A stretch of DNA of 64,000 nt, taken from the NCBI GenBank assembly GCA_965644295.1, contig CBFFRP010000136.1:124001-188000 (forward strand), in the 5' to 3' direction. Both the position numbers and the translations under genes were made by a program. Shown in pieces: positions 32,367 through 39,991 of the stretch; position 1 is the first letter of the stretch, and each line of letters begins with the position of its first letter. Origin of the DNA: Paraphysomonas bandaiensis. Its lineage: Eukaryota > Protista > Chrysophyceae. The notes below the pieces were generated by a model. That model made no database searches. It was not told where the DNA came from and was given only the letters and a program-made list of their open reading frames with translations.

Positions 32367-33933
32367 TCAATCATTCTCTACTTGTTTCACCTTCTCTCCT
32401 TCCCAATTCCTCCACTCCATACCCTTCGGTGCTTGTTTTTCATCTTCGTAATTCTTTTCCCCAACCTCCTTCCAATTAGTGGAGAGCACAGTACCTGTGT
32501 TACGCAACATCAATGGGCAACCGTACAATACACAAGCAGAATACTGACCGCCTGATGTTTGAAAGGACTTATTCATTGCACGTCTCGTGTCCTCGTCTGC
32601 CTTGGCATATATGTCCCGGAACAGCGTTTGAAGTGCTTCCTATTTACAATAATATTAGTTCACAGATTACAATACTCATGGCATCATACCTCTCCTTCGG
32701 GCTTCTCCTTCTCCAGTTCATCCTTGATCTCGTTTTCAATCTTCTCCCAGTCCCTGTGGGAAGCGTATGGCTTGGGCTGAATAAACGCGTACCATTAAGA
32801 CATTGGAATGACGTATCCACGCATGCATTTGCACACCCTACACGTTTATAACAAAACAACTCATGGAATGTACACTACCTTCTTGACTTGCTCCGTCGTA
32901 GAGGTGGGAGCACGACGTACTGCCGATCCCTCCAGACTCGACCATTCTCCCTCTGCTGCTTTACGTAGAATCACTTCCACCTGACAGTAGTTGATACATG
33001 AACTGCGTCGGAGCAACAAGTGTGCACACATTTCCACCAATATATGACATGCTGAAATAATTCCTACCTTAGTTTTCTTTACTGCCACTCTACACTCTTC
33101 TGGAACAACGGCCGCAAAAAGAGGCTTGTCGAATACAACCACTGCAGAGCAAATGAAATAAGCCGTCCGTTAAATAGACGTATGTGTGGGTGGCACTCAC
33201 CTTCTGCACCATCTTGCATGACGGCAATGCGGAGGTGCTGCGACTGGAAGTTCACCAACGCATCAGACTGCTGAAGATTTTTAACCAGTACGGATATGTT
33301 GACTTGTGAAGAGGACTGGTAGTACTGGTATCGGATTGAGGGCAGCGCAGAAGGAGCAGGAACAGGAGCCACCACAGGCTTCTCGGGCTGTGGAGGAGGA
33401 GGCTTGGAATCCTCCAATTCTGACCAATGGAAGACGGAATTACATCTCAAAACACACAATACTTTCCCAATCACACCTTTTAACTCCGAATCACACTTGC
33501 GGATCCATCGCATGTTCAATACGCAATCTTTCCCCTTGTCGGCACGCAACTTCTTGGATATCTCAAAGCACTTCTTTGAGCTTTCGAATTCATCCAATTC
33601 AAACAAAGCACAACCCTTTCTGAAATAACTAGGCTCGTGATCAGCATTGAGGGATATAGCTCGATTACAGTCCTGTGCAGTGTGATCACTCCATGGGCTC
33701 ATAGACGACACAGACACACATACCTCTACAGCCCGTGAATACTGTTTCAACTTTAAATGAGTTGAAGCTCGACAGGCATAAAGAGGGGCAAAATTAGTGA
33801 GTGTTTGAGCGGCATTGTTGTAGTGCTGTATAAGAATTAATACACATCATACACACACATACATACACACCTCCAGAGCGGCTTCGAACTCCTCATCTAT
33901 ATATAGAACATTACCGTTATTGAATTGCTCCAT
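32367..33933 (-). CDS. SGT1: SGT1 Hsp90 co-chaperone (TPR-CS-SGS), multi-exon
   Basis: TPRs, CS domain (IRYQYYQSSSQVNISV) and SGS domain [51 protein letters not shown] after splicing. Confidence 0.95.
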
Positions 33934-34463
33934 TCCTCTCTGTCTGTAAGGGTGATTATCAATCAGATGGAAGCAACTGTACTATAAGTGAGAGGTGGGG
34001 TGGTGATTCTATTGGACTGTTTGTATTGTGATCCTCTGCAGATGGGTGTGTACTGCTGTATGCTGCATGAGTCGAGTGTCGAGGTGTGTACGTCTAGAGG
34101 TCGAGAGTGTATGTATGTATGTACATGGTACAGCTGTATGAAGAGTTCGAGAAGAAACGTATTCTGTATTCCTCTGTAGTGGAAGCATCTCTGACTCACA
34201 GCTGCTGCTGTATATACATGATGGTACTGCATACAGTATACAGCATACAGTACATGTATACACAGCTCTCCATACTGTACATGTATGCGGTATGATGATC
34301 ACCTCATAGTATACACTGCTGTATACATGGCTCTCTGCTCTGCTCTGCTCTGCTCTGCACATACATATACCATATACATACATACATCTCACCTCCTCTG
34401 TAGCTCATACTCTCATATCAATCCACTTCCACCCTATTAATCACTCTCACCACAACACCACAC
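33934..34463. promoter_or_regulatory. Putative bidirectional promoter (SGT1 / b5-fusion gene)
   Basis: 530-bp head-to-head spacer; GTATGT-rich left half, CATACA-rich right half; CTGCTGTA at 34053, 34205 and 34316; short (CTCTG)n run. Confidence 0.6.
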
Positions 34464-36194
34464 ATGGCCTGGAAACGTGGAACACAGAATAACTCAGCAG
34501 GGGAGATCCGTAAGGGCCATATACGTGAATTCCTCGTATCCTCTAGTAAACAGAGGGGTGTGGTCGGTCAACTCAAGATACTGGCTATGGAAAACACACA
34601 GTTTATTAAAGATTTTGGTGAAGGATACTTCGCATTGATCTGCTCAGAGACGAATGGATTACCCTCTCAGTTCTCTCCATATGTTGATAAGAACGTCATT
34701 CATCTGCACTCTCATGATCATCCCAGGTACACACACACACTCGTTGCAATGAGATTGTAATGCTTTTGTAGATGTGTCCTTTCAGCTCTAATAAACGATC
34801 AAGTTCCGAGAGGCTGTATAGTGTTAAATGAGATTCAGTGCTTAAACTCGAAGGTCTGCGTTGGCGAGTTGGAAGACTGGACTGTCTATCAGGGGGAAAG
34901 TTTTACATATGATGGTCGGGAGGGAGCAATAGGAGATACTGAAGTTCGTTATGTGGACCGACCTGTGCCGTCTTTACAGACTATGGCGATGTGGGTGCGA
35001 CCACGTTACCCGAATGCATCCGATTGTGCTCCTGTGACTCGATTAAATGGTACCACTTTAGCACAGCATATCCAACGGTCGCTTTACGGCGCTATTGTGT
35101 CTGCGGATGAGGTATTTCAAGTCACCTTGGAGGGTGTTGCGGTAGTGTGTCGCGTAGGTGATATGGAAGCTGCTGGAGAGGAGGAACAAGAGGAAGAAAC
35201 AGACATATGCATGCCGGATTGCCATAGAGGTGTGGTGGACGTGGACACTGTAAGTTCCTTGGTCTAATTCCCTCCGATGTACTAATAATATGCATAGTCC
35301 GTTTATTTGTGGGTAGAAGGAACACCCCCAAATTTCGAGTTGCATGATAATCCCATTCGGTCCACTAATCGTGTTATCGCAAACGTGGTGACGGTGTTGA
35401 GTTCTGACGATGAACTTTTCCCCGTAAAGCGCCGCCTACTCCGCCCTTGTATATCTCTCACATCAATAGTTCAAGCAGGACGAGGCAAGTACAAAGATGA
35501 TGAAACAAAGGACAGGCCAGATGAATGGGATGTGCGCGTTCCAGTTGACGCCTGTACCTTCGATAGGGTTTTGCTGTACCTTGAGCATGAGGCACGTGGG
35601 GAGCAATTCAAGTTCGACCCGCTGATAGCCCCTGAGCTTCTAGAGGCCGCCCAGTCACTGCAGGTGCGAGGGCTACAGGAGGCTTGTGAACGAGTACTAG
35701 GAAGTTTTGAGGAACGTGTTCGTCGCACACCTATCCCCTTGCAGGAGGTTATAGATAGGAATGAGCAGGGTAGGCTAATGGCAGAGGATCCGTCTAGACG
35801 GGGTAAACGGGGGGACACCCTTCTCATCATGTCTGGCATGGTGTGTTTGTAAATTTCAGAGCTTTACGGTGTTACATATTTTTGTTTTCTATAGGTACTG
35901 GACATAACGCGGTGGTTAGACGAGCACCCTGGTGGATCAACCATTATCCCGGAGCAAGCACTGAATATGGATTGCACCGCCTTCTTCGAGATATACCATG
36001 CCAGTCGTCAGTCTTTTCTTTATTTGAAAGAGTTTTACATAGGTGAGCTCTCTGAAGTAGACAAAGAAAAGGTTCCTCTACCGCCAGGCGGAGCTGTGCC
36101 GTCACCTGCGTTCTTAGAGCAGCTGAATAGAGTAACCCCGTGGAGACTTAAGCAAGAGGATTTACAGAATTATGTTGTTCATAAATCATTTTAG
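34464..36194 (+). CDS. Multidomain protein: NSF/CDC48-N-like domain + Skp1/BTB-like domain + C-terminal cytochrome b5 haem-binding domain
   Basis: b5: VLDITRWLDEHPGGSTIIPEQALNMDCTAFFEIYHAS..LKEFYIGEL (both His ligands). Skp1-like: VLSSDDELFPV..VDACTFDRVLLYLEH..ELLEAAQSLQVRGLQEAC. The N-terminal part resembles the two NSF N-subdomains. Three GT-AG introns. Confidence 0.75.
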
Positions 36195-36838
36195 TTGCGA
36201 TTCGTTGATAGTTATGCTTTATCCATATATTTCTGATGTGTCATATAAAAATGTTTATTATTTGGAGGAAAATGGTAGGAATTGTGCTTGGATTAGCACG
36301 TAGTGAAGGTTTACTCAGCTGATGAACACTCCGAAATGCCGAAATGCACAATCTAATTCGAATTCTCTATTGGAAGCATTGCAGTTCTGTTTTCCTTAAC
36401 TTATTACTGCTTCGTAAAGCTATACCGTAGTTAACTTGAACTACATCAGTGTTATAATATGTAAATAATGTTGATTGATTGTGTGATTGACAGTTGACCA
36501 TTGAATAGGAAGTATTCTAAAAGCAAGCGTATATAGAAAAAATATATTACTTTATTTCAACTACGGCTATTACATAGTTATACTACATAAAAATTCTACT
36601 GCGCATTAATAATTAATACTGCACTTAAATATCTACGACTAATAACGTCCTGCTACGTAGCCGCAAAAATGAATAAGCTGTTTACATGTTTACATGCACC
36701 AGTCACACAACATATCACGTGAAAGAAAGGAAATCAATACACTGTTCAAATCCGGCGGTGTCCACAAATCTACTACGTAATACAAGTTATTCTATCGAGA
36801 ACTATAGACAGGCAAATATAATTAATAGATATCTAGTA

Positions 36839-39800
36839 TCAAGTATCCGTTAATTCGGAAATCATTGATGAATCATTCTTCGAGCGTATGCCATGTTTTA
36901 TTCGGAGGCTCTGTTTCGAGTACGACGGATATCTTGCAGACACACCTGCGTAGACGTTTCCTAAGTAAAAGTACATAGAGACTGGGTCAGTGTCGTCCAC
37001 ATACTCTGACTCGACTTCCAGTTCCATCGTGCTGCGCGTTTTATCAACGATTCGAGAAGAAGAACCAACACCCGTTTGAGTTTCGTCTAGTGCTAGAAAA
37101 CTGTTGTTAGTCGAAAGAGACCAATCTAACGAATTGTTAGCGCTTCTATCTATGGTCGATGTGAGACTTTCGGTGTTGGCAAGCAGCCCACCCAGCTTAA
37201 AGTACTTTTCTAACTCGGGATCACTTTCCGTAAGCGCAGTATCGTTCTCCTCTATATCGAGTTTTATTTCATCATCTATCCTAGAGTACTGCAAAACGGA
37301 CTTAGGTTCAGGGAGAGGAGTATCCACAGCTGTAGATGTAGCAATTTCTGAAGATGAGACTGCACGGACAGCCACTTTGACTGGGGTTCGGCGGCGGCGG
37401 CTAGGAGGTGTGATTGGATTGTCATTTCTTGAAGAAGCAGATTCCGTCGAAACAGTGGAATTCACAATTGTTTCGTGGTGTTCGGATGCCTTTATTGGAG
37501 AGGGACTTGGCACAACGTCTCTTATCTCAGGTGATTTTTTATCAGGTTTGATGCGAACAGGAATACGGGATCTCTTACCCAAACTTACCGGTTCATGTTG
37601 CATTCTAACCTCACACACCGGAGTTATTGGGTCGCGCGTCGGAGAACTTATCGCATCAGTTTTCTCGTCATACACACAATTCACTGAAACACTGCTTTCA
37701 ACGAAGGAATTTTCAGCACAATTTTTATCAGCATCGTTATCCGATTCATCCGATGGTACATCACCGACATCCAATAGTTGCATTAGTCCAGCATGCGATA
37801 CGACCTCTTCTTCGCCATTCCCAGGTGTAGAAGTCGTGGATCTTTGGTCCGGTCGTATCTTCCGATTCTCATCGTCCAGTCGTTTCATTGCTGCTGCAAC
37901 ATCTCCCGACAAACTAGATACAAAACATTGCGCTTCATCGGATGCCCTGCGAGATGACTCGGGCTTCTTTTTCGCACTAGCAGCTGTTCTCTCTCGCCGT
38001 AGCCTTTCCATTTCCACTCGAGATGCAGCACGGGCGGCCTCTTCTCGCTCCTTCAAACACTCCATCATGTTGTTGACAGAAGATACAAGTTCCTCGACGA
38101 ATAAGTGTGCATCACCTGGAGGACCCAGGGGTCGGCCGTTATTGTATATAATTACTGGAGCTTTTTTCTGATTCGAGGAACGATCCAACCCAGAAGGCAT
38201 ATCTCCCTGTGACGCTTGTGGCACACTTTTCCGGGGAGTTACTGGACTCACCGATCGTTTGGGTGCAATAGTAGAAGTGACTACAGGTTCCGGAAGAGTA
38301 TCTACTTCAGCCTCACATTCCACATCCCGATTTGGGGAACTAGTTGCGTCATATTGACTTGGCGAATCCTCGAAAGGTGGGGACACAGGTGGAGAGGCTG
38401 AACTGGTTGTTGGAGACAGTATTTTCACTAAATCGGATGACCTCACTCGCCGCTCCGGAACACGCCTCTCCCCTATAGGAATATACGGTGGTACCACGTT
38501 GCTGGTGTTACCTCCGGTACTCCTAGCACGTACGGTAGCAACCGAAATATTTGAAGATTTCTCGACGGCTGGTGTCCGAAGTTGCATTTGAATTTTACAC
38601 TCTGATAAAGTTGACGCTGAGGATGATACTGATTGAGTTGTTGAGACACTCTCCTCACTATCGGACACACTGTCGATCACAACAGGTGCCTCTGACTCTC
38701 CCGGAAGAGACGCAGATGAAAGTACGACTGCATCAGATTCTTCATCTATCGATTGAGGTACAGAATTTCCTGGCACATCAGGAGAGACACAGGCGTGGGA
38801 AAAGGAAATTGTGGGGTTGGGCTCAGGGCTCTCTTTCCGGTTCAAGTCCATTTCAATATTCTGAGAAATATTATCCCCCTCATCAATATTTGGCACACTC
38901 TCCTTAGCACAGTCAATGTTCGTTACAGTCTCCTTATCACTATCCATATTCGATGCATCACCCTTGCCATAATCCACATTTTGGACTGGCTCCTCTCTAC
39001 CATCAACACTCTTCGCAATGTCGTTGCCCCCATCACTGTTCTCCACAGTGCTTTTCCCCCCTGAAAAGCCTGAAGGAGACGGTGTAGATGTGTCCACATA
39101 CAGCGGAGTGATTCCTTGGGGACTGAGGGTGATGCGGGAAGGCTTTACTCGCGGAGTGGGTGATGGAAGTGGAGATGTAATTTGTCTGGCAAGTTTGCTA
39201 GCCCTTCTGCTCGGTGATATCGCCCCCTCGCTATCATGAGCACTAAAATCGTCTCGTGATGATTGGGGAGCATCCATGCTGTAACTAGAGCCCTTCAATT
39301 CTCTATGGGTCTCGCTGTTGGTCGAGTTTATAGTCCCCATAAGTCGATGAATTCTTTCTCGCAGTGCTTCCCCTTCAGGGTCAGAAGCTGGTGCGATGTC
39401 ATTGACTGCTGCAGATGTAGTCGGTGGAGGGGTGTATCTGAAGACTTCTGTTTGTTGGGAGTCCTCCTCAACATGTGCATGTCCACCGCTCTCGATATGT
39501 TCTAGAGTATCTAACAAGCTAGCTGATGCAACCGAGCTCTTTTTCGCGACAGTTGTGGGCAGCGCCAATGTGGCCTGAGGAGCAGCCTCCTCGTTAGTTG
39601 AAGATGCTGCGCTGAACAAACTCCTAAAACTATGCCCAGAACTTTTCCCTTTGGACATTGATTTGTTGGCCAGTTCAGACTTTATAGGCTCTGGCATGGC
39701 AGCTGTTGGGGACTCATTTGCATCGTCCCATTCTGAAGATCGCCAGTCTTTAAAGCTCCCTTGAGATCTTAATTTTTTCGGAGCTTTCTCTGTACTAGTG

Positions 39801-39991
39801 TCGTCACTGAAATACGATTCTGATGAAGGGATATTACTCGGCTGAGCTGATAGGCGTGACGGTCGTTCGCTCTGAGCTCTCTGAAATAATGACTCCGAAG
39901 GAGGATCACTTTTCTTCGACTTACCGAACAGTTTTGATCGGACTATACTTGTCCATGATTTATTTTTGGTAAGTTTTCCCCTCTTGCTCAT
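36839..39991 (-). CDS. 1050-aa Ser/Pro/Glu-rich, largely disordered protein with a short coiled coil, intronless
   Basis: Uninterrupted 3153-bp ORF, many SP/TP sites, no recognisable globular domain. Confidence 0.85.
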   Translation of the reverse strand: MSKRGKLTKNKSWTSIVRSKLFGKSKKSDPPSESLFQRAQSERPSRLSAQPSNIPSSESYFSDDTSTEKAPKKLRSQGSFKDWRSSEWDDANESPTAAMPEPIKSELANKSMSKGKSSGHSFRSLFSAASSTNEEAAPQATLALPTTVAKKSSVASASLLDTLEHIESGGHAHVEEDSQQTEVFRYTPPPTTSAAVNDIAPASDPEGEALRERIHRLMGTINSTNSETHRELKGSSYSMDAPQSSRDDFSAHDSEGAISPSRRASKLARQITSPLPSPTPRVKPSRITLSPQGITPLYVDTSTPSPSGFSGGKSTVENSDGGNDIAKSVDGREEPVQNVDYGKGDASNMDSDKETVTNIDCAKESVPNIDEGDNISQNIEMDLNRKESPEPNPTISFSHACVSPDVPGNSVPQSIDEESDAVVLSSASLPGESEAPVVIDSVSDSEESVSTTQSVSSSASTLSECKIQMQLRTPAVEKSSNISVATVRARSTGGNTSNVVPPYIPIGERRVPERRVRSSDLVKILSPTTSSASPPVSPPFEDSPSQYDATSSPNRDVECEAEVDTLPEPVVTSTIAPKRSVSPVTPRKSVPQASQGDMPSGLDRSSNQKKAPVIIYNNGRPLGPPGDAHLFVEELVSSVNNMMECLKEREEAARAASRVEMERLRRERTAASAKKKPESSRRASDEAQCFVSSLSGDVAAAMKRLDDENRKIRPDQRSTTSTPGNGEEEVVSHAGLMQLLDVGDVPSDESDNDADKNCAENSFVESSVSVNCVYDEKTDAISSPTRDPITPVCEVRMQHEPVSLGKRSRIPVRIKPDKKSPEIRDVVPSPSPIKASEHHETIVNSTVSTESASSRNDNPITPPSRRRRTPVKVAVRAVSSSEIATSTAVDTPLPEPKSVLQYSRIDDEIKLDIEENDTALTESDPELEKYFKLGGLLANTESLTSTIDRSANNSLDWSLSTNNSFLALDETQTGVGSSSRIVDKTRSTMELEVESEYVDDTDPVSMYFYLGNVYAGVSARYPSYSKQSLRIKHGIRSKNDSSMISELTDT

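Follow-up and report, generated by a model that had tools for sequence, protein, structure and literature searches.

A single-copy chrysophyte gene predicted to combine an NSF-type N-terminal domain without an ATPase, a Skp1-like domain and a cytochrome b5 domain

We analysed a stretch of 64,000 nucleotides from Paraphysomonas bandaiensis (GenBank assembly GCA_965644295.1, contig CBFFRP010000136.1, positions 124,001 to 188,000 of the forward strand; hereafter the window) and found at window positions 34464-36194 one expressed gene, present in a single copy, that encodes a protein of about 527 residues. The protein very probably consists of three domains. Structural modelling indicates that residues ~30-270 form an NSF/Sec18-type N-domain, composed of a double-psi barrel and an alpha/beta subdomain, that carries no AAA ATPase. 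The domain that follows adopts, in its predicted structure, the BTB/POZ fold, with a sequence profile that points mainly to the Skp1/Elongin-C subtype, and the C-terminal domain is a predicted haem-binding, soluble cytochrome b5. Judged by alignment, this layout is conserved in a stramenopile family extending from diatom-like sequences to oomycetes.

The gene comprises four exons with 527 codons and a stop codon on the plus strand, as read from the sequence at 34000-36700 (Table 1). Logan contigs of four RNA runs from four studies, one of them a poly-A marine metatranscriptome, were mapped to window positions 34300-36400 (2,101 letters). All four runs omitted exactly 45, 48 and 54 bases at the predicted introns, with the first splice joining 34726 to 34772, and the 5' starts of the contigs fell at 34377-34422. 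Individual contigs spanned 34473-36262 and 34422-36158, covering the four exons. Because single contigs reach across the four exons, it is read as one transcript and not as two genes, an outcome that an earlier interpretation of the letters (the sequence-only reading) had allowed for while proposing a single gene. The three introns of that reading were confirmed by the RNA; for intron 2 it had given only the start, after 35249, which was correct, and its start of intron 3, 35842, was one base off, the true position being 35841. The searches with the window protein were run exon by exon, and profiles of the N-domain and the middle domain found no paralogue in the 62.5 Mb genome.

The N-domain extends over exons 1 and 2, and its fold was modelled with AlphaFold2 on residues 1-275 of the relative P0070, which heads an alignment of 70 family sequences (A2). 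The model had a predicted local distance difference test score (pLDDT) of 86.6 and a predicted template modelling score of 0.83, and the window matched the family N-domain profile with an expectation value (E) of 1.8e-79. A Foldseek search of the PDB with the model revealed NSF or Sec18 in all of the 50 top matches, with a best E of 2.8e-11 and, taking the isolated N-domain structures 1qcs and 1qdn as the reference for normalisation, template modelling (TM) scores of 0.76-0.79. An exhaustive structural aligner, which compared the same model with all 48,161 representative chains independently of Foldseek, placed NSF-N (1qdn_A) at the top with a Z-score of 19.2 and a root mean square deviation (rmsd) of 2.6 Å, 187 of 189 residues being aligned. 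Sec18p-N (1cr5) had a Z-score of 17.4, and the more distant matches were CDC48A-N (13.6), p97-N (12.8), PEX1-N (12.7), UFD1 (12.6), Pex6 and VAT-N (9-10) and DEPDC5 (8.6-8.9). Enzymatic double-psi barrels scored 6 or less; those of formate dehydrogenase, nitrate reductase and aspartate decarboxylase reached 5-6. At the level of the fold, these values agree with the sequence-only reading, which had by eye preferred an NSF/Sec18 N-domain to other domains of the Cdc48 type.

The sequence signal of the N-domain was weaker and pointed in the same direction. The only sequence match of the A2 profile in the PDB was Sec18p-N (E 0.077), in two collinear stretches. Upon alignment of A2 with hhalign, the N-domain exon of the genome's own NSF gave an E of 0.0018 over 133 collinear columns, while UFD1 (E 0.014, 51 columns) and CDC48 (E 0.018, 27 columns) of the same genome matched only in the shared N_B hairpin. 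The language-model neighbours of exon 2 were clusters of CDC48_2, CDC48_N and PEX-1N. Exons 1 and 2 had no Pfam match, the UFD1_N1 and UFD1_N2 models matched neither the window exons nor 19 relatives, and searches of the PDB with the single sequences of exons 2 and 3 returned matches at chance level only. We also found that the N-terminal peptide of the protein is nearly invariant in the family, with low confidence in the AlphaFold2 model, and that 40 of the 70 aligned members carry a 19-residue YD.REG.IG.T insertion. Since Pfam found no AAA domain in the window exons or the 19 relatives, and the coding region leaves no room for one, the ATPase is taken to be absent, as the sequence-only reading had stated.

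For the middle domain, the window's own exon 3 was modelled from an alignment of 84 sequences (pLDDT 85.8). Foldseek placed Skp1 chains first (E 7e-5), and the tightest superpositions were those with Elongin C, which showed TM scores of 0.66-0.72, rmsd values of 2.4-3.5 Å and sequence identities of 22-26%. The exhaustive aligner gave a Z-score of 12.3 for Skp1 (1ldk_D; rmsd of 2.5 Å over 104 aligned residues), 11.9 for yeast Skp1, 10-11 for classical BTB domains, 9.7 for Elongin C at 28% identity and 9.2 for the BTB/3-box region of SPOP, and all of its 50 top rows were BTB/POZ structures. The family profile matched Elongin C over its full length (E 4.5e-4) and Skp1 at an E of 0.15. As classical BTB domains score within about one Z unit of Skp1, the assignment to the Skp1/Elongin-C subtype rests mainly on the sequence profile. 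The Skp1/BTB domain recognised earlier by eye was thereby recovered in both structure and profile. Two helices follow the BTB core, after which the cytochrome b5 domain starts directly. A complex prediction for a homodimer of the middle-domain core, in which the alignment was not used, scored 0.00 against a mark of 0.32, a value that speaks neither for nor against self-association.

The cytochrome b5 domain was the most readily recognised of the three. Exon 4 alone matched Pfam PF00173 (E 1.4e-8; 35.1 bits against a cut-off of 23.7), and the same model, the only one to match among the relatives, was found in 15 of the 19 (best E 9.2e-16). The family profile matched solved structures of microsomal and outer-mitochondrial-membrane b5 at an E of 3e-15. 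The window protein has both axial histidine motifs, EHPGG and IYHAS, and the second was kept in 97 of the 99 near-full-length members that have HPGG. No stretch of 19 residues exceeded a mean Kyte-Doolittle value of 1.39 in the whole protein, or 0.51 in the last exon, so a membrane anchor is considered absent. These features bear out the claim of the sequence-only reading that both histidines are kept and that the anchor is missing, and the domain is accordingly predicted from its sequence to be a complete, soluble bis-His b5. The protein ends in KSF, a tripeptide shared exactly by 80 of the 99 members with a complete b5 domain, which range from diatom-like sequences to oomycetes; we know of no targeting or docking signal that this ending matches.

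To define the family, an unrestricted HMMER search with exon 2 as the query was run against 1.84 billion representative proteins, which yielded 65 clusters, many of them proteins of 500-580 residues matching at residues 85-250. When the full-length relative P0005 was used as the query of a word search, 173 proteins were retrieved, and all named ones were from stramenopiles. Members include Aureococcus, Pelagophyceae CCMP2097, Chrysophaeum, Ochromonadaceae CCMP2298, Rhizochromulina, Mallomonas and Epipyxis as well as many oomycetes, among them Phytophthora infestans (PITG_04850), whose intron-less gene translates exactly into its annotated protein. The layout was kept in at least 115 near-full-length sequences, and the alignment of 19 full-length members was collinear throughout, starting with MAWKRG... 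and ending with ...KSF. The closest relative, P0070, follows the four window exons collinearly with identities of 51-77%, including 62% between exon 1 and its residues 1-88. In the ESM Atlas, two large clusters had the family layout; they are labelled Oomycota and 'commonest Chlorophyta', the latter being a putative affiliation. Members without a b5 domain are gene models that stop at the position of intron 3 in the window, so that their truncation is most likely due to gene callers that do not allow for introns.

The annotations among the 173 proteins were only hypothetical or 'cytochrome b5 domain-containing', and literature searches found no paper on the family, in keeping with the earlier statement that no characterised protein with these three domains was known. 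Databases list the family merely under its b5 domain because two of the three domains are invisible to Pfam. The one studied oomycete b5 protein, PlCB5L1, was considered and rejected as a member, since it has 160 residues, an unrelated sequence and a different layout. Two multi-stretch matches of the large search, P0035 and P0055, were spurious and belong to bacterial repeat proteins. In two models of Aureococcus anophagefferens, P0108 (788 residues) and P0114 (797 residues), a His-phosphatase domain (His_Phos_1) precedes the family protein, which may represent a merged gene model or a lineage-specific fusion.

The N-domain of NSF touches alpha-SNAP through R10, R67, K68 and K104 (PMC11532144, citing Zhao et al. 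2015 and Matveeva et al. 2002). SNAP-SNARE binding of NSF is reduced when R67, S73 or Q76 is mutated, and the NSF N domain in isolation fails to engage SNAP-SNARE (PMC11532144). We compared these residues with the family in a register taken from the weak hhalign alignment to the genome's own NSF, with counts over the 70 aligned members. In this register, NSF Q66-R67-K68 corresponds to family positions 111-113, S73 to position 118 and Q76 to position 121. The site of R67 (position 112) is Arg in 29 members, Leu in 20, Met in 15 and Cys in the window protein; 64 members have Ile, Val or Leu at the site of K68 (position 113); and the equivalent of K104 is variable. R166, which precedes the K104 equivalent by a few residues, is basic in 63 members. 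The only invariant residues of the whole N-domain, present in all 70 members, are N114 and C118 of the NSKVC motif, whose loop aligns with NSF Q66-Q76, part of the SNAP-contact surface of NSF. The loop comes after the His-rich strand HLHSHDHP; the family-alignment residues H83, H85 and H87 are conserved in 61-77% of members, and the motif LHxHxHP is found in 45 of the 115 near-full-length members.

On the evidence of this alignment, in which R67, K68 and K104 but not R10 had placeable equivalents, the basic alpha-SNAP contact set is not conserved in the family. Because the basic residues are replaced by invariant Asn and Cys with a His-rich strand nearby, the ligand is probably not alpha-SNAP. 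The pattern suggests that the family uses the face homologous to that of NSF for a different ligand, or possibly for a metal or redox site.

The three folds, including both haem ligands, are under selection across the family, and a mode of action may be proposed from their known roles. The NSF-N-like domain would serve as a recognition module, presenting the surface loop that NSF uses for alpha-SNAP, probably to another ligand. A helical partner, such as a cullin-type scaffold or an F-box- or BC-box-like helix, would provide the docking site for the Skp1-like domain. The b5 domain, placed roughly where Skp1 carries its F-box-binding helices, would either render this docking dependent on the haem occupancy or the redox state, or supply the docked partner with electrons. 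An adaptor mechanism of this kind, linked to haem or redox state and drawn by analogy, is in our judgement a tentative and somewhat doubtful proposal. For the explanation as a whole, that is, a single-copy gene of three folds whose product acts as a haem- or redox-linked adaptor, we consider the chance to be slightly less than even.

A more specific form of the proposal is a new class of adaptor for cullin-RING (or similar) ligases, in which the N-domain would recognise a substrate or cofactor and the b5 haem would gate assembly. The built-in Skp1/Elongin-C-like domain would then replace a separate adaptor subunit, with the b5 domain at the F-box site. The sequence-only reading had likewise suggested, as its second option, a substrate receptor that would couple haem, O2 or redox state to membrane traffic. 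The genome has four cullin genes, on the G000 contigs C380, C379, C41 and C660. FBXL5, which carries a hemerythrin domain, offers a functional analogy for a ligase adaptor that senses haem or oxygen. This form, too, is an argument by analogy, and we regard it as quite unlikely; if true, it would be a stramenopile-specific degradation switch that senses haem or oxygen.

Several observations weigh against the domain assignments and the adaptor proposal. The N-domain model was built for a relative, whose identity to the window protein in these exons is 51-62%, and not for the window protein itself. Neither CDC48_N (PF02359) nor CDC48_2 (PF02933) was matched by the window exons at E values up to 10 or by the 19 relatives at E values up to 0.1. 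Likewise, the Skp1 models of Pfam were unmatched in the window exons and BTB reached only an E of 0.21 (12.2 bits against a cut-off of 20.5), and no relative among the 19 matched Skp1_POZ, Skp1 or BTB at an E of 0.1 or better. The proposed mechanism is drawn from the roles that the three folds have in other proteins, and b5 domains are usually electron carriers rather than sensors.

The sequence-only reading had raised an ATPase-less NSF decoy, whose N-domain would bind the alpha-SNAP-SNARE complex and thereby tie membrane traffic to haem or redox state. NSF-N is indeed the nearest fold by a clear margin, SNAP-family proteins are encoded in the genome, the most conserved loop of the family corresponds to part of the SNAP-contact surface, and the basic R166 lies near the K104 equivalent. 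However, the R67, K68 and K104 sites do not keep their basic character in the weak register used here, the isolated N domain of NSF does not engage SNAP-SNARE (PMC11532144), and no support was found for a self-association that could provide avidity. The decoy was not upheld by these residues, and we consider it decidedly improbable. Another alternative is a redox enzyme or electron-transfer protein, in which the b5 haem would give electrons to, or receive them from, a catalytic or metal site in the barrel formed by the invariant Cys and Asn and the His-rich strand, with the BTB domain only as a structural spacer or oligomeriser. In fusions, b5 usually serves a catalytic partner, as in desaturase, nitrate reductase, sulfite oxidase and flavocytochrome b2, and several such fusions are among the b5 profile matches. 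C118, N114 and LHxHxHP also resemble a metal or redox motif, double-psi barrels occur in enzymes that match the model at Z-scores of 5-6, and a gene of the b5-reductase type adjoins one relative. Nevertheless, the fold is far nearer to the non-catalytic NSF-N than to any enzymatic barrel, the His-rich motif is confined to the minority of members counted above, the reductase neighbour occurs at one of five loci examined, and Pfam recognised no known cofactor motif in the window exons or the 19 relatives. We consider this explanation unlikely.

The divergent neighbour of the gene raises another alternative. It is an SGT1-like gene lying head-to-head about 700 bp away, with a CS domain and weak TPR matches, and yeast Sgt1 binds Skp1, so that the two products could form a module through the Skp1-like domain; the Sgt1-Skp1 complex 5an3 was among the structural matches of the middle domain. 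The RNA depth is zero at 34300-34370, between the two genes, which indicates that the neighbour is a separate transcript. Moreover, no neighbour of the SGT1 type was found at any of five other loci (a metagenomic relative, Pelagophyceae CCMP2097, Phytophthora infestans, an NCBI assembly and a JGI contig), and we therefore treated the adjacency as coincidental; a functional module is very improbable. That the gene model is an artefact, with two or three distinct genes or a degenerate NSF merged into one, has nothing found in its favour, and its probability is close to negligible: single RNA contigs cover the four exons in several studies, the collinear layout recurs in more than 100 sequences, including the intron-less gene of P. 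infestans, and an intact NSF is present elsewhere in the genome.

Table 1. Positions of the gene, its domains and motifs, and the adjoining genes in the window.
Feature	Positions	Strand	Description	Evidence
Exon 1	34464-34726	+	87 codons and 2 bases; start codon, first NSF-N-like strands	sequence, RNA contigs
Conserved N-terminal peptide	in exon 1	+	MAWKRGTQNNSAGEIRKGHIREF	
His-rich strand and loop	34701-34724	+	HLHSHDHP (family motif LHxHxHP)	family alignment
Intron 1	34727-34771	+	45 nt, GT..AG	skipped by RNA contigs in 4 of 4 runs
Exon 2	34772-35249	+	159 whole codons from 34773; remaining double-psi barrel, YDGREGAIGDT insertion, alpha/beta subdomain, acidic linker, D.(Y/H)RG motif	sequence, family profile
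NSKVC motif	34845-34859	+	in exon 2; loop aligned with NSF Q66-Q76	
Intron 2	35250-35297	+	48 nt, GT..AG	skipped by RNA contigs in 4 of 4 runs
Exon 3	35298-35840	+	181 codons; last N-domain strands, variable linker, Skp1/Elongin-C-like BTB domain, first third of b5	
Predicted Skp1/Elongin-C-type BTB domain	35382-35732	+	exon 3 residues 29-145	AlphaFold2 model, structure and profile matches
Cytochrome b5 domain	35733-36050	+	split by intron 3	Pfam PF00173, family profile
Intron 3	35841-35894	+	54 nt, GT..AG	skipped by RNA contigs in 4 of 4 runs
Exon 4	35895-36194	+	99 codons and stop; b5 core and conserved soluble tail	
Axial His codons	35925-35927, 35997-35999	+	EHPGG and IYHAS, respectively	
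C-terminal tripeptide KSF	36183-36191	+		family conservation
SGT1-like gene	33079-33750	-	head-to-head neighbour	CS domain E 5e-7, weak TPR matches
Ser/Pro-rich open reading frame	36839-39991	-	1050 residues; converges on the 3' end of the gene	no Pfam match

Apart from the genes listed in Table 1, the surroundings of the locus show a region at 34230-34400, either intergenic or promoter sequence, that is rich in short repeats, namely catacata/tacatg runs and (ctgct)n. On a metagenomic contig, a gene with FAD_binding_6 and NAD_binding_1 domains (cytochrome b5 reductase type; L002:5615-6577, plus strand) lies about 1.1 kb upstream of the homologue at L002:7723-9393, and no such gene was present at the four other loci examined.

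Elsewhere in the genome, a canonical NSF gene is located at G000:C139 (L029:3355-4340, minus strand), where an exon matches NSF residues 95-270 at an E of 6e-29 and continues into the D1 Walker A motif. Because this NSF exists, the gene studied here is an additional gene and not a substitute for NSF. The NSF gene has at least three short 5' exons, and the QRK motif (ALQRKCMSVTLGE), the counterpart of R67/K68, is retained in its N-domain. Genome-wide scans with CDC48_2 (PF02933) and CDC48_N (PF02359) did not recover the locus studied here; they first gave CDC48, a CDC48-like gene, AFG2, UFD1 and a UFD1-N and UBX gene, with NSF at C139 following later. Canonical UFD1 is at G000:C182 (L030:1072-2139), and the UFD1-N and UBX gene is an open reading frame of 389 residues at G000:C201 (L015:2321-3487, plus strand) with UFD1_N1, UFD1_N2 and a C-terminal UBX domain. 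It represents a second Cdc48-N-type fold without an ATPase in this genome, fused to a Cdc48-binding domain.

The three folds are already known, and so are Cdc48-N-type folds without an ATPase, as in UFD1 and DEPDC5. What is new is the motor-less NSF-type domain, its fusion to Skp1-like and b5 domains, and the architecture of a widespread family known as 'b5 domain-containing'. To our knowledge, the NSF-type N-domain has been described only as the adaptor-binding head of the NSF ATPase. A motor-less NSF-N-like protein has been kept across a major eukaryotic lineage that includes relatives of the diatoms and the Phytophthora plant pathogens, and it offers a natural case for asking which ligands other than SNAPs an NSF-N fold may recognise. 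Should the haem domain control the docking of the Skp1-like domain, the family would provide a new coupling of haem or redox state to the assembly of a protein complex.

We compared the family with known systems domain by domain. The N-domain of NSF/Sec18 (1qdn, 1qcs and 1cr5) shares the two-subdomain fold nearly end to end, with a weak, collinear sequence signal, and the local motif Q-R-x4-V-x2-G-E of the genome's NSF resembles Q-(R/L/M)-x-N-x-x-(V/L)-C-x-G-(Q/E) of the family. Unlike NSF, the family has neither the D1/D2 ATPase rings nor the basic SNAP-contact residues, the sequence identity is 11-13%, and the family adds an N-terminal peptide of about 30 residues and, in the 40 members mentioned above, the insertion, which lies between the subdomains. 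UFD1 and the N-terminal domain of DEPDC5/Iml1 are Cdc48-N-type folds without an ATPase, which show that the fold works as a free-standing recognition module, although they are clearly more distant than NSF-N and have other partner domains.

The middle domain shares with Skp1 and Elongin C the BTB/POZ core and one to two following helices, with 22-28% identity in the superpositions. Skp1 and Elongin C are free-standing, whereas the family domain is embedded in a larger protein, and where Skp1 continues after the core into its C-terminal F-box-binding helices, the family protein has the b5 domain. BTB substrate adaptors of the SPOP type have the same order of an N-terminal recognition-type domain, a BTB fold and helices. 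The recognition domain of SPOP is a MATH domain and that of the family is NSF-N-like; SPOP has no haem domain, and Cul3 binding of the family is only putative. Finally, the bis-His b5 domain without an anchor and fused to other domains is shared with flavocytochrome b2, sulfite oxidase, Ncb5or/CYB5R4 and plant RLF, but its partners in the family are two protein-interaction folds and not recognisable redox enzymes.

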